NCBI GenBank assembly: GCA_002104945.1
Contig: MCFH01000030.1
Coordinates: 434,001-498,000 of the forward strand
Origin: Piromyces finnis finn
Lineage: Eukaryota > Fungi > Neocallimastigomycota
DNA length: 64,000 nt
Reading direction: 5' to 3'
The notes under the pieces were generated by a model. It was not told the origin of the DNA, made no database searches, and saw only the letters and a program-made list of their open reading frames with translations. Each line of letters begins with the position of its first letter. Within the stretch, counting starts at the first letter, position 1. The translations under genes and the position numbers were made by a program. Shown here piece by piece: positions 30,651 through 52,975 of the stretch.

Positions 30651-32060
30651 ATGTTAAATATTGAATGTCTAAACAGTATTATTCCAAGATTAAGAGTAGA
30701 CAGAGATGACCTTGAAATACTTTTAAATGAATATATTCGTAATGCTTTTTTTCCTTGGGTATGTATTATTTTATTATTAAATAAAAGAAGTTGGAAAAGA
30801 CCAGTCATTATTATTTTAATAGGTCATTGGTTTCTTCGTTCTACCGGAAATGTATTAAGAGATTGTATGTATTTAAGAGAAGGGGATATCGGTACAGTAT
30901 GGCCTTATGGTGCTTTTAATTGGTATGTTAGTAATGCTTTAGCTCATGTTTTTTGGTTATCTGGGGAAATTATGGGAGATTGGTATCCTCTTCTTCGGAC
31001 AAAAGCGGTAACTAATAATACTCGAAAAATGAAGAGTGTTTATGCTATGTGCATTATTTACAATTTAGTAAAAGTTTTTGGTATTATAACTTTTTTTTTA
31101 AGTAATCCTATCGACTTACATACAAAGTCCGTAATGGTTAATGGAATTATTCAAACTTTTATACCAAAAGATTTGCAAAAGTTTAATATAGCATGGTGGT
31201 CTACCGTAGCAGTGATCAATATTGTTAGTATTTTTTATGATATTTCTGTTATATATTGCATGAGAAAGAGTTTTTTTGACCGTTTAAAAGAGTATAAAAC
31301 ACATAAAGAAAATACATTTATGGATAAATTTAAACAAATTTCTGAATTTCGTATTATTATTTCATTGGTTTCCTCAATGCTATTTTTATTATTTGTCATT
31401 CCATTTGTAGTCATGATTGTGATGGAAAATATTAAAAATATTAAAACACCGTATACCGTATCAGAATATAAAAAGGATGATATTGAACAATTACGTCAAG
31501 TGGTTTTATCTATTAATTACAATTTAATGTATATTGATCAAATTTTATTGCAAACCTTTGTAAAAGAAAATACCACAATTAAAATTAAAGTAAATAAAAA
31601 TTCTAATCATAGTACTTCTTCTTCTTCCATAAAATATAATCATTCTCCATACCAAAAATTAAATATTACAACTAATTTATACGGATCAGAAACCCTTAAT
31701 TTCTCACCCTCTTCCTATTCTTCTCCTTCCTCAACTTTTCAAAAACCAAGCATCAATTCTACACCTAACTCAACCATGGGCTTATCTAATACGGATTCCA
31801 CAACTTTCAATGATTCTTATTATGAACCCTTTTATCTAGAAAATAAAAATTATTCCAATGTCGAACTCTTTAATTACTATCCAAATAATGAAAGAAAATA
31901 TGAAAATTCAAAAGGTATAAATTTTCATAAAATATCTTCTCCTTCCAAGGATAATGATTATTATGAAAGTCATAATCTTTCTTCTTCTTGTAAATCTTAT
32001 ACCAATAATAGAAATATATTTTCTTCTTCTCATTATTGTATAAATGATTTAAAGCAATGA
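30651..32060 (+). CDS. 7TM GPCR-like membrane protein, paralog 1
   Basis: Seven hydrophobic segments followed by a Ser/Thr/Asn-rich tail. Shares the motifs FPW, WKRP..HWF.RS.G, GE..GDWYPL.RT, WW, KFKQISEFR and MYIDQ with five neighbouring ORFs. Confidence 0.8.
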   Translation: MLNIECLNSIIPRLRVDRDDLEILLNEYIRNAFFPWVCIILLLNKRSWKRPVIIILIGHWFLRSTGNVLRDCMYLREGDIGTVWPYGAFNWYVSNALAHVFWLSGEIMGDWYPLLRTKAVTNNTRKMKSVYAMCIIYNLVKVFGIITFFLSNPIDLHTKSVMVNGIIQTFIPKDLQKFNIAWWSTVAVINIVSIFYDISVIYCMRKSFFDRLKEYKTHKENTFMDKFKQISEFRIIISLVSSMLFLLFVIPFVVMIVMENIKNIKTPYTVSEYKKDDIEQLRQVVLSINYNLMYIDQILLQTFVKENTTIKIKVNKNSNHSTSSSSIKYNHSPYQKLNITTNLYGSETLNFSPSSYSSPSSTFQKPSINSTPNSTMGLSNTDSTTFNDSYYEPFYLENKNYSNVELFNYYPNNERKYENSKGINFHKISSPSKDNDYYESHNLSSSCKSYTNNRNIFSSSHYCINDLKQ

Positions 32061-32925
32061 TTAAAAAAAAGAACAAAAATATAGAAAGATTGAAAAATAT
32101 TATAAAAATAATTAAATTTTAACTTTTATAAATATAAATCATTAGAAAGTAATACAATATGACATATGACATAGACTATATATTTTAAATTGTAAAAAAA
32201 TAAATAAATAAATTAATAAATAAAATAAATGAATAAATAAATATAAATTAAAATTTTTTTTATCTAAATATTTATTTCTTATGATTATTTATTTAAATTG
32301 TTAAATAAAAGAGTCATTACTATATGGCCAACTACAAGTTATTGGTGACATTTTTAGTGGGTGAAAAAATTATAGTATGGCAAATTAATTTTGAGTAGGT
32401 AAAGAAATAATTTTCAATTTCTTTTTTTTTTTTTTATTTATTTTTTTATTACTTTATTTTTTTTTAAAAAAAAATACATGTAAAAGATACGAATTCTATT
32501 ATTTTTATTATTTTTTTTTTATAAAATCAAATTTTGGTTTTGAGGTCTTTTATATTTTATTATTTTATATTTTATATAAAATTTATTATTTTTTTTTTTT
32601 TTAATTTTTTTTTAATTTTAATTTAAAAAAGTCTTTTTTAGAATTCCAGATGCTTTTTAATATTTTATTTTATTTCTAAATATAAAATGTCTTTTTTTTT
32701 ATTTTATTTATTTTTTTATTTTATTTTTTATTTTTTATTTATTAATTTATTTATTCATTTATTTTTATTTAAAATATTTTTTTATTTTTTATTTATAATA
32801 AAAATAGTTCAATGATTTTAATAAAACTTTTAATTAAATAGGTAAAAATAATATTAAAAAAGAAACTTTGTTTAATATTCGTTTTTAATAAAAAATAAAA
32901 AAAAAAAAGAAAGGTTAGGTGGACT

Positions 32926-33200
32926 ATAGTCAAGGTATTTGGAATGTGTTGCTATTTTATGGATTACCCAATTGATTAACTCATTTTGATAAATAAAGAA
33001 AAGAGGTCAACGGAACACTTATTTTTAAAATATGATGGTGGACTACTGTTGCTGTTATTCAAATCGCTAGTTTTATATATGATTTATCGGTAATTTATGC
33101 CTTAAAAAGAGGACTTTTTGATAAAATAAAAGAATGTCGAAGGAATGTCAAAACTAATTTTATGGAAAAGTTTAAACAAATATCCGAATTACGTATTATA
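32926..33200 (+). pseudogene. Truncated pseudogene fragment of the 7TM family (TM4-TM6 region)
   Basis: Translates as IVKVFGMCCYFMDYPID, then a frameshift and stops, then WWTTVAVIQIASFIYDLSVIYALKRGLFDKIKECRRNVKTNFMEKFKQISELRII. Confidence 0.85.
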
Positions 33201-33317
33201 ATAATGAAAAAATTCATTTATTTTATTATGAGATGAAATTTATTCTTCTTTTATATATCTTTATTTTTATCCATATTTTTTTTATTATTAAACTAGAAGA
33301 ATAATTAGAATAGTAGT

Positions 33318-51202: not shown

Positions 51203-51370
51203 TAAATTATATCTATTATGGAAGGGGTAATTTCTATGATAATTTATATCTATTATAAAAGGTTAATTACTATTATGATAATTTATATCTATTATATATA
51301 TATATATAATGATTTCTATGATATTGTTTATATCAATTATATATACATAGGGTAATTTCTATGATAGTCT
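51203..51370. repeat. Imperfect AT-rich minisatellite downstream of paralog 6
   Basis: Recurring taatttctatgat and aatttatatctattat units. Confidence 0.6.
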
Positions 51371-51538
51371 AATTCAATGATGTTATTTATCATATATGGA
51401 TTATTATGAATATGAAGTAAAAAGAATTTTTAAAATAGAAATGAATTAACTACTTTTCTTTTTATCCATTATTTAATTTATAGCAATTTTATTATACATT
51501 ATATATTTCAAGCAATTATTATTATTATTATTTTTTTT

Positions 51539-52975
51539 TTAATAATTACTATAACTAAATATTTTTATATTTGAAACTTTACTACGACAACCAGAAGGGT
51601 ATAACGATGGGTTCTTATACGATGAATTATTATTATTATTAGAAGAAGAATGATTGGAATTACCACTCATGTAATAATCATTTGTAGCTGTATTATAATA
51701 ATTAATATAATTATTATAATAATTATATTTATTATTATTTTCATTTTCATAATAATTAGGATTAAGATTATATTTATTATATTTATTTTCATTTGTACTT
51801 TGATGAGTTGCTGAACTTTGGGTATCTTTATAAAAATTATTAACAGGTTTACAATATGTCTCTACTATAGAACTAATAGAGTTTACAGGTAATGGAGGTT
51901 CTTCTTCATACCCATTACCATTGGAATGATATTCATGGTACGAATGATAGGAATGATGAGATAGATTTTCATTTACACTTTTTGATGATGAGAGTAAATT
52001 TGTATTTGAAAAAGAAGGAAAACTTATACTGGAATGATCTTTAGATTTTAAGGAATATTTCCTATATGATTTTCTTGGTTTACTACGACGACCAACATAG
52101 CATATTAATAAAACTTGATCGATGTACATTAAAACAAAATTAACATCAATGAGAGCACGTCTTATTTGATCCACACTAAAATAATCTATTTCATTTATTC
52201 CAATCTTTTCATTGCTATATAATAAATTAACATAGACTATAATAATAGTAATAAGAATAGGTAAATATAATATAGTAACAAACATTGAAATGAAAATACG
52301 GAATTCCGATATTCTTTTAAAACGTTCGATAAACGAATTGTTTCTTTCTTTGAAGAAATTTAATTGACTAAAAAGATTTTGTTTCAAACAAATGATAATG
52401 GATAAATCATAAATAAAACTTGCAATTTGAATTAGGGCCACAATAATCCACCATTGAAGAGTATATAACTTATCATCAGCAGGGTCTGGTAAATTGACTT
52501 GTCTAGGTATGGCAATAAAATAAAAGAGAATACTACATACCTTTGTCATATTATACAATAAACAGGTAACATAAATAAATCTTATTTTTTTCTTATTGTT
52601 TATGATTGCCTTTGTTCTTACCAAAGGATACCAATCCCCAATTATTTCACCAGTAGACCAAAATACATTAGCTAAAGCCGTTCCTATCATATAAGCTTTT
52701 TCATTTAATTTATTTATTTTAAAAGTTGGATCTTTTATTAATAAATACATGAATTGGTTTAAACAGTCTCCCGTTGATCGAAATATCCAATGAACTATTA
52801 ATAATATTAATACCGGTCTTTTCCAATTATTTCTATTCATAATAATAACCAAAAAAGTCCATGCGAAAAAAAGACTTTTAATATAAGATACCGGCATCAA
52901 TTGATATGAATTAATAGGACCATATGGAAATGTCGTTTTTTTATTCGTTTCAATACATGATATTAGACTTTCCAT
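51539..52975 (-). CDS. 7TM GPCR-like membrane protein, paralog 6
   Basis: FAWTFLVIIM, WKRP, GEIIGDWYPLVRTKA, QWW, RFKRISEFR, MYIDQ. Confidence 0.8.
   Translation of the reverse strand: MESLISCIETNKKTTFPYGPINSYQLMPVSYIKSLFFAWTFLVIIMNRNNWKRPVLILLIVHWIFRSTGDCLNQFMYLLIKDPTFKINKLNEKAYMIGTALANVFWSTGEIIGDWYPLVRTKAIINNKKKIRFIYVTCLLYNMTKVCSILFYFIAIPRQVNLPDPADDKLYTLQWWIIVALIQIASFIYDLSIIICLKQNLFSQLNFFKERNNSFIERFKRISEFRIFISMFVTILYLPILITIIIVYVNLLYSNEKIGINEIDYFSVDQIRRALIDVNFVLMYIDQVLLICYVGRRSKPRKSYRKYSLKSKDHSSISFPSFSNTNLLSSSKSVNENLSHHSYHSYHEYHSNGNGYEEEPPLPVNSISSIVETYCKPVNNFYKDTQSSATHQSTNENKYNKYNLNPNYYENENNNKYNYYNNYINYYNTATNDYYMSGNSNHSSSNNNNNSSYKNPSLYPSGCRSKVSNIKIFSYSNY

Follow-up and report, generated by a model that had tools for sequence, protein, structure and literature searches.

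The window analysed here is a stretch of 64,000 nucleotides from the anaerobic gut fungus Piromyces finnis, and its subject is an array at positions 30651-52975 of six paralogous genes, g1 to g6, whose products are predicted to be seven-helix membrane proteins. An original prediction, made by a model from the DNA letters, had described them as six paralogous single-exon open reading frames (ORFs), three on each strand and meeting tail to tail, accompanied by a pseudogene fragment. ORF coordinates and alignment agree with that description: there are six intact single-ORF paralogs, three per strand, with g3 and g4 tail to tail, and a tblastn search over the whole window recovers exactly these six and one fragment. 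The elements of the array, in which TM denotes a transmembrane helix, are as follows.

30651-32060, plus strand: g1, 469 amino acids; seven-TM core at about residues 15-309, then a Ser/Thr/Asn-rich tail
32926-33203, plus strand: pseudogene fragment, found by tblastn; spans the end of TM4 to the start of TM6
34137-35402, plus strand: g2, 421 amino acids; the first protein modelled
37220-38410, plus strand: g3, 396 amino acids
40492-42243, minus strand: g4, 583 amino acids; the longest tail, and DLY in place of DWY
40573-40856, minus strand: tandem repeat in the g4 tail; 63-bp unit, 4.5 copies, 97% matches, score 526 (Tandem Repeats Finder)
48156-49442, minus strand: g5, 428 amino acids
51539-52975, minus strand: g6, 478 amino acids; the most divergent of the six

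The window has a GC content of about 18% (13-27% per 2-kb bin), and ORFs of 396-583 codons in such DNA are not chance products. The six proteins have a short N-terminus of about 15-35 residues, can be aligned over about 300 N-terminal residues and then diverge into low-complexity tails rich in Ser, Thr, Asn and Tyr. Identities between the paralogs range from 31 to 52% overall, with 31-44% to g1 over the full length and 39-52% to g2 over the core. In the cytoplasmic tail of g4, the 63-bp repeat encodes a repeated unit of 21 residues, seen in the translation, and looks like a recent expansion. Three of the genes have identical public proteins (g2, P0001; g3, P0030; g6, P0082), and the public gene models of the other three are altered or truncated: that of g1 (P0062, 343 amino acids) starts at Met127, that of g4 (P0104, 552 amino acids) has a different N-terminus and that of g5 (P0098) is a 345-amino-acid piece. 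As the first helices are lost from the public models of g1 and g5, filters for seven-helix proteins would drop them.

Conservation is concentrated in a small number of motifs. Invariant in all six paralogs are F34, W36, K49, R50, H59, W60, R63, S64 and G66 in TM1 and TM2; G105, E106, G109, D110, Y112, P113, L114, R116 and T117 around TM3; and W182, W183, F223, F227, K228, S231, E232, R234, N289 and M293-Q297 in the motifs of TM5 to TM7. The only conserved cysteine is C134, in the inner half of TM4, and the only conserved histidine is H59. The list of invariant motifs put forward in the original prediction mostly stands, with a few substitutions: the Pro of 'FPW' varies (FLW in g5, FAW in g6), 'WKRP' reads LKRP in g4 and WKRT in g3, the Trp of DWY is Leu in g4, and 'KFK' is RFK in g4 and g6.

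The structure of the core was modelled with AlphaFold2, for g2 with an alignment of 61 sequences and, as a second model, for g6. Both give seven helices and agree with each other, with a predicted local distance difference test score (pLDDT) of 87.3 and a predicted template modelling score (pTM) of 0.86 for g2, and 85.7 and 0.85 for g6. The helices of g2 are long: TM1 17-43, kinked at FPW, TM2 51-75, TM3 88-120, TM4 124-147, TM5 168-210, TM6 217-256 and TM7 262-299. A Kyte-Doolittle scan finds 4-6 distinct hydrophobic peaks only and never detects the amphipathic TM3; as hydropathy undercounts in this way, the helix number of seven, expected at the outset from hydrophobic segments, rests on the AlphaFold models.

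Foldseek searches of the PDB return, for both models, best matches that are nearly all G-protein-coupled receptors (GPCRs), of classes A, T, D and F. An exhaustive structural alignment against 48,161 chains places yeast Ste2, the class D mating-pheromone receptor, first for both g2 (Z 16.0, 248 residues, root-mean-square deviation (rmsd) 5.9 A) and g6 (Z 16.5, 244 residues, rmsd 4.9 A), with a lead of 2.5-3.2 Z units over the next-ranked structure. Behind it come TMEM87A (Z 12.8 for g2 and 14.0 for g6), TAS2R14 (12.2), and class A receptors, AdipoR2 and rhodopsins (Z of about 10-12.4). Rescoring of the Foldseek list of g2 gives Z 15.9 for Ste2 and 14.2 for inactive-like Ste2. The ESM Atlas's own model of g6 has a STE2 cluster as its best match (TM-score 0.63, 242 residues), and STE2 clusters rank first and third among the named families nearest to g6 in language-model features and are also listed for g2; the Atlas shape search with the g2 model yields nothing beyond the cluster of the family itself and some weak bacterial entries. 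No transporter or enzyme fold competes among the structural matches of the two models. On the models, then, the proteins of the window are assigned a GPCR-type seven-helix fold, as the original prediction had proposed, and the nearest known fold is predicted to be that of fungal class D Ste2, not that of class A. We consider them to be a real, new family within the GPCR fold, as far as predicted structures can show.

A GPCR fold need not imply coupling to a G protein. The family might instead have a trafficking, channel or lipid role like that of the GOST protein TMEM87A, or act through another signalling partner, and TMEM87A is indeed the second-best structural match of both models (Z 12.8 and 14.0), while AdipoR2 and microbial rhodopsins also reach a Z of about 10-11, a reminder that fold alone does not prove function. 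Set against this, Ste2 scores above TMEM87A by 2.5-3.2 Z units in both models, the luminal GOLD domain has no counterpart in an N-terminus of only about 15-35 residues, and PF06814 has no match in the six proteins or in 47 members of the family. The conserved cytoplasmic face and paralog-specific outer half described below are, moreover, what would be expected of a receptor family with a shared transducer. We regard a GPCR-fold protein of this other kind as unlikely, although it is the alternative to be taken most seriously.

The orientation in the membrane follows from the loop charges. Mean counts of Lys and Arg against Asp and Glu in 47 homologs are 3.4/0.1, 5.2/0.3 and 7.5/3.3 for the intracellular loops ICL1, ICL2 and ICL3, and 2.1/1.9, 2.4/3.9 and 2.0/1.3 for the extracellular loops ECL1, ECL2 and ECL3. 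As the positive-inside rule thus holds across these homologs, the N-terminus lies outside and the tail inside, which matches the N-out topology anticipated by the original prediction. The same charges bear on a further explanation for a seven-helix fold, namely that these are light-driven or hydrolase-type proteins such as microbial rhodopsins or relatives of PAQR/AdipoR. Rhodopsins and AdipoR2 do appear in the structural lists, at Z 9.5-11.2, but 5-6 Z units below Ste2; the TM7 consensus holds no conserved Lys that could carry retinal; the PAQR zinc site of three His (and one Asp) is absent, H59 being the only conserved His, and there is no Pfam match; and PAQR proteins have the opposite topology to the N-out orientation favoured here. 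This explanation is very improbable.

With the inner and outer halves of the bundle set by the helix boundaries of the model, conservation is clearly higher on the cytoplasmic side, with a mean of 0.654 compared with 0.458 on the outer side (p = 5.6e-13, Mann-Whitney test). The 45 best-conserved positions include 34 from the cytoplasmic half, so that the contrast first drawn between conserved intracellular and variable extracellular parts is upheld. The conserved blocks are E106/G109/D110/W111/Y112/L114/R116/T117 at the cytoplasmic end of TM3 (GDWYPLxRT), Y190/D191 in TM5, F217/F221/S225/E226/R228/I229 in the cytoplasmic extension of TM6 (F..KFKxISExR) and, on the inner face at the end of TM7, MYIDQ, within a TM7 that reads N-x-x-x-M-Y-I-D-Q-x-L-L. 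A lock between R116 and E226 is possible. The model puts D110-R116 where TM3 (helix 88-120) reaches the cytoplasm, the place of DRY in class A. The original prediction, which had DWY..R sit where class A has DRY, is right as to position, but the nearest fold is class D and not class A; the likeness is positional only, with no evidence of homology.

At the level of sequence, the family stands apart. Neither Pfam, at E <= 1 for g1 to g6, nor NCBIfam has a match for the proteins of the window, and the profiles PF02116 (STE2; a profile hidden Markov model, HMM) and PF00001 (7tm_1) match neither the six proteins at E <= 1 nor 47 members at E <= 10. Several relatives (P0013, P0037, P0043, P0045, P0061, P0157 and P0196; none of the named P. 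finnis proteins looked up) carry the automatic UniProt name 'G-protein coupled receptors family 1 profile domain-containing protein', which shows that the PROSITE family 1 profile PS50262 fires on some relatives and that a weak GPCR label is already in the databases. The description of the family as uncharacterised therefore holds for Pfam and NCBIfam and is qualified by these names.

Could the proteins be true, highly diverged class D members, that is, Ste2-type mating-pheromone receptors that have multiplied in gut fungi? Ste2 is the best match in four partly independent searches. PF02116, however, goes undetected in 47 members even at E <= 10, the class D hallmark of TM7, LPLSSMWA (preprint 10.64898/2026.01.14.699465), is replaced by N...MYIDQ, and a single pheromone system is hard to reconcile with 16 or more paralogs per genome. 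We know of no sexual cycle described in gut fungi. Such an origin is improbable, and the family, which resembles Ste2 in fold and not in sequence, is not filed as a member of the Ste2 family.

Several observations weigh against reading the family as receptors of GPCR fold close to Ste2. The Pfam search with 47 members at E <= 10 yields no coherent family, and there is no sequence link to any GPCR family; family profiles run against PDB sequences give short chance matches only (a mitoribosomal protein and HIV V3-loop peptides); and the sequences show neither LPLSSMWA, the class D motif, nor the motifs of class A. The Foldseek E-values are weak (best 0.0096) with TM-scores of 0.3-0.5, de novo designed helical bundles reach Z 12.4-13.6, at 12.4-12.7 in the exhaustive alignment and at 13.6 for one designed filament in the rescored Foldseek list, and the AlphaFold models of g2 and g6 are not fully independent, their alignments being largely common. 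Ser/Thr/Asn-rich tails are a frequent feature of this AT-rich genome and have no value as proof. Judged on these models, the margin of Ste2 over helical-bundle noise, about 2.5-3 Z units, appears real but modest.

The family is large. When 1.84 billion representative proteins are searched with a core profile, 201 score E <= 1e-3 and 149 of these E <= 1e-30, which amounts to at least 200 clusters at 50% identity, and a search from the most divergent clade adds 178 clusters at 90% identity with a longer N-terminus. P. finnis itself has at least 16 members, the six of the window and ten named elsewhere, and tandem arrays recur in other sources. Among the matches listed, those with names all come from Piromyces, Neocallimastix, Anaeromyces and Orpinomyces, and the others from gut metagenomes or Logan assemblies; the weakest 51 of the 201 (E of 1e-29 to 1e-3) lie outside this range of matches and may hide relatives from beyond the gut fungi. 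As far as the searches reach, the family thus appears restricted to Neocallimastigomycota, and the lineage-specific distribution proposed for it is consistent with every match checked.

A second, equally large subfamily, formed by P0066 and its relatives, occurs on other P. finnis contigs. Its members are extended at the N-terminus by about 65-80 residues, in which Trp, Gly-Thr and Cys-Tyr positions peculiar to the subfamily are conserved ahead of TM1; the extension could be a small extracellular module.

The history of the array was read from a maximum-likelihood tree of 127 sequences, in which no gene of the window is nearest to another; each pairs with a protein of another source. Support for these pairings by the Shimodaira-Hasegawa-like approximate likelihood-ratio test (SH-aLRT) is 98-99% for g1, g2, g3 and g5 and 92% for g6. 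The nearest relatives are P0024 for g1 (73% identity), P0002 for g2 (70%, in a tandem array on a metagenome contig) and P0027 for g3 (58%), P0077 from Piromyces sp. E2 is the ortholog of g5 (74%), and g6, which pairs with P0100, belongs to a well-supported clade separate from that of g1 to g5. Three members stand in tandem on a metagenome contig of 13.6 kb. On contig KZ151021.1 of Piromyces sp. E2, a g6-like gene, the g5 ortholog, a frame-split member, P0032, P0011 and the g2 ortholog follow one another on one strand; as the whole E2 array has one orientation, the tail-to-tail layout of the window reflects inversion of one block.

The fragment at 32926-33203 is 69% identical to P0032 of Piromyces sp. 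E2, with three in-frame stops and one frameshift, and is the decayed counterpart of the P0031/P0032 subfamily. It lies just upstream of g2, and the intact P0032 of Piromyces sp. E2 likewise precedes the g2 ortholog. Taken as a whole, the array is old, stable and syntenic with that of Piromyces sp. E2, with the loss of one gene. The birth-and-death turnover of the original prediction is accordingly overstated: there has been one death, among old paralogs kept in synteny and with both halves of the core under purifying selection. The hallmarks of rapidly turning-over chemoreceptors are lacking, with no recent species-specific duplicates, one pseudogene in the array and a ratio of nonsynonymous to synonymous substitution rates (dN/dS) in the outer half of 0.15-0.28. 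Two members on the E2 contig are split over two overlapping frames (L008:13210-14495 and L005:11236-14666) and must be frameshifted pseudogenes unless the assembly is at fault; the frame break in P0003 is spanned in its public model by an 'intron', at the cost of about 50 conserved residues.

These dN/dS values come from the Nei-Gojobori method applied to three ortholog pairs and are approximate, as dS is 0.8-1.5. The inner half has values of 0.13-0.19, the outer half 0.15-0.28 and the tail 0.38-0.65; g1 has 0.13 in its inner and 0.22 in its outer half, and g5 has 0.15-0.19. The whole core is thus estimated to be under purifying selection, the outer half shows no sign of positive selection in these pairs, and fast evolution of the outer parts in the manner of chemoreceptors, which the original prediction had led one to look for, is not seen.

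Selection and conservation also bear on whether the ORFs are decaying or non-functional gene relics. There is a clear pseudogene in the array, Piromyces sp. E2 has copies split over two frames, and only three of the six genes have a public model free of truncation or alteration. Against these stand ORFs of 396-583 codons kept intact in 18%-GC DNA, core dN/dS values of 0.13-0.28 in three ortholog pairs and many residues invariant across 47-61 homologs, which together make decay an extremely improbable account.

The ratio of outer to inner identity is 0.93-0.96 in the three closest ortholog pairs, 0.64-0.77 in three more distant ones and, on average, 0.65 between paralogs of the window (range 0.51-0.81). 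A uniformly faster outer half would predict the opposite trend, since differences would then be most unequal between the halves in the least diverged pairs. In this small sample of sequences, the pattern therefore points to an outer half that diverged after duplication and was conserved from then on, as paralog-specific ligand sites would be. Of the variable ligand pockets foreseen originally, an outer half that is paralog-specific and kept between orthologs is supported.

Swimming zoospores of anaerobic gut fungi locate plant fragments by chemotaxis, and to our knowledge no receptor for this behaviour is known. We found no published description of the family in the literature, and nothing usable on G-alpha subunits in gut fungi. 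A census of gut-fungal membrane proteins reports about 100 class C receptors with large ectodomains and, by InterPro keyword, only one or two 'rhodopsin/Dicty-CAR' receptors per species (PMC5168858). No sequence in its complete GPCR table contains GDWYPL or MYIDQ, which indicates that the family was left out of the published census and accords with the earlier remark that these genes are unlike the class C receptors described from gut fungi. As to expression, three sequencing runs, whose RNA nature is a guess, hold 24%, 10% and 6% of the sampled words of 33900-38600, and a Logan contig with P0036 from SRR8491975, a run not established as RNA, ends in a run of A just past the stop codon.

Around the genes, the window carries other elements. 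The 5.9-kb gap between g4 and g5 holds remnants of a PD-(D/E)XK 'transposase' (PF12784) at 44609-45777 on the minus strand, where an 88-amino-acid ORF (45511-45777) corresponds to the start of the PF12784 profile (E 4.6e-13) and a neighbouring 238-amino-acid ORF has no Pfam match. Just past g6, at 56269-61625 on the plus strand, is a Ty3/Gypsy retroelement with capsid, reverse transcriptase, RNase H and integrase domains, and at 16289-16978 on the plus strand a 229-amino-acid ORF has a clear match to RNA_ligase (PF09414, E 7e-22). Long trinucleotide runs at 33226-33477, directly after the pseudogene fragment, and at 54469-54756 form poly-Tyr or poly-Ile/Asn ORFs.

Taken together, the reading that we favour, with confidence a little better than even, is that of a large family of plasma-membrane-type seven-helix receptors found only in gut fungi, with a GPCR fold and a helix arrangement closest to that of Ste2, a shared transducer and paralog-specific ligands. 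Every paralog would have an extracellular ligand of its own, bound in the outer half, and the conserved inner face would relay the signal to a cytoplasmic partner common to all. If Ste2 is a guide, a heterotrimeric G protein is the most likely candidate for this partner, a suggestion that draws on the conservation of the cytoplasmic face and on the likeness to Ste2. Desensitization or endocytosis may be controlled by the Ser/Thr-rich tails, which evolve fast, as in Ste2. Sensing of nutrients or chemoattractants by zoospores or germlings is plausible, and 'chemoreceptor' is a reasonable hypothesis only.

The finding matters in several respects. Anaerobic gut fungi play a leading part in the breakdown of plant fibre, and the family offers concrete candidates for the sensing of small molecules. 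Comprising no fewer than 16 genes in P. finnis and over 200 sequence clusters in all, it is a second gut-fungal family of receptor-like proteins that went unnoticed beside class C, and it deserves a profile-HMM entry. It may also extend the Ste2-like (class D) helix arrangement beyond the mating receptors of Ascomycota, which bears on the origins of fungal GPCR classes. A bolder and tentative proposal, which we hold to be doubtful, is that of a new fungal GPCR class, an ancient offshoot that shares Ste2-type ancestry and has multiplied in the gut fungi, its paralogs having become distinct sensors of the plant or gut chemicals by which zoospores or germlings are guided. If it were true, the family in the window would be the missing receptors with short N-termini behind gut-fungal chemotaxis.

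Among known systems, the class C-like GPCRs of gut fungi (Seppala et al. 2016, PMC5168858) come from the same organisms, are likewise multigene and often in tandem, and have been proposed as environmental sensors. They differ in their ectodomains of 200-1600 residues with sugar-binding-protein or pectin-lyase folds and in the signature IPR017978 (PMC5168858), whereas the family in the window has an N-terminus of 15-35 residues and no class C signature. Class A receptors (PF00001; PS50262) share the seven-helix fold and an acidic-aromatic-Tyr...Arg pattern at the cytoplasmic end of TM3, and the family also has a proline in TM6 (FLPF) and a Tyr near the cytoplasmic end of TM7. It lacks R3.50, D2.50, CWxP, NPxxY and the disulfide between TM3 and ECL2, however, with D-W-Y-P-L-x-R rather than DRY, no conserved Asp in TM2 and FLPF in TM6, and the structural scores of class A (Z 10-12.4) fall 4-6 units under that of Ste2.

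TMEM87A (GOST; PDB 8hsi) resembles the family through its seven-helix domain, the second-best structural match, and differs by its luminal GOLD domain, absent here, and by the lack of sequence similarity. Another parallel is DUF7703 (PF24802), a group of uncharacterised seven-helix proteins from Ascomycota, which is the top Atlas shape match of the g6 AlphaFold model (TM-score 0.59, 235 residues, rmsd 4.2 A) and turns up again when g2 and g6 are compared by language-model features (scores 0.84-0.85); these scores are leads only, and the Pfam scans give no match to PF24802.

Ste2 itself (PF02116; PDB 7ad3 and 7qbc) differs in that no sequence similarity can be detected, in having LPLSSMWA where the family in the window has MYIDQ, and in being a single-copy mating receptor of Ascomycota, against 16 or more genes per genome here. 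Class D receptors are described as lacking DRY, PIF and NPxxY and as differing in helix arrangement (PMC8942848). Like the family in the window, Ste2 is a fungal seven-helix protein with its N-terminus outside and a long Ser/Thr-rich cytoplasmic tail, and DRY, NPxxY and the class A disulfide are absent from both. Of the structures compared, Ste2 comes closest to the predicted helix arrangement, standing 4-6 Z units above class A and about 2.5-3 above designed bundles in both models.

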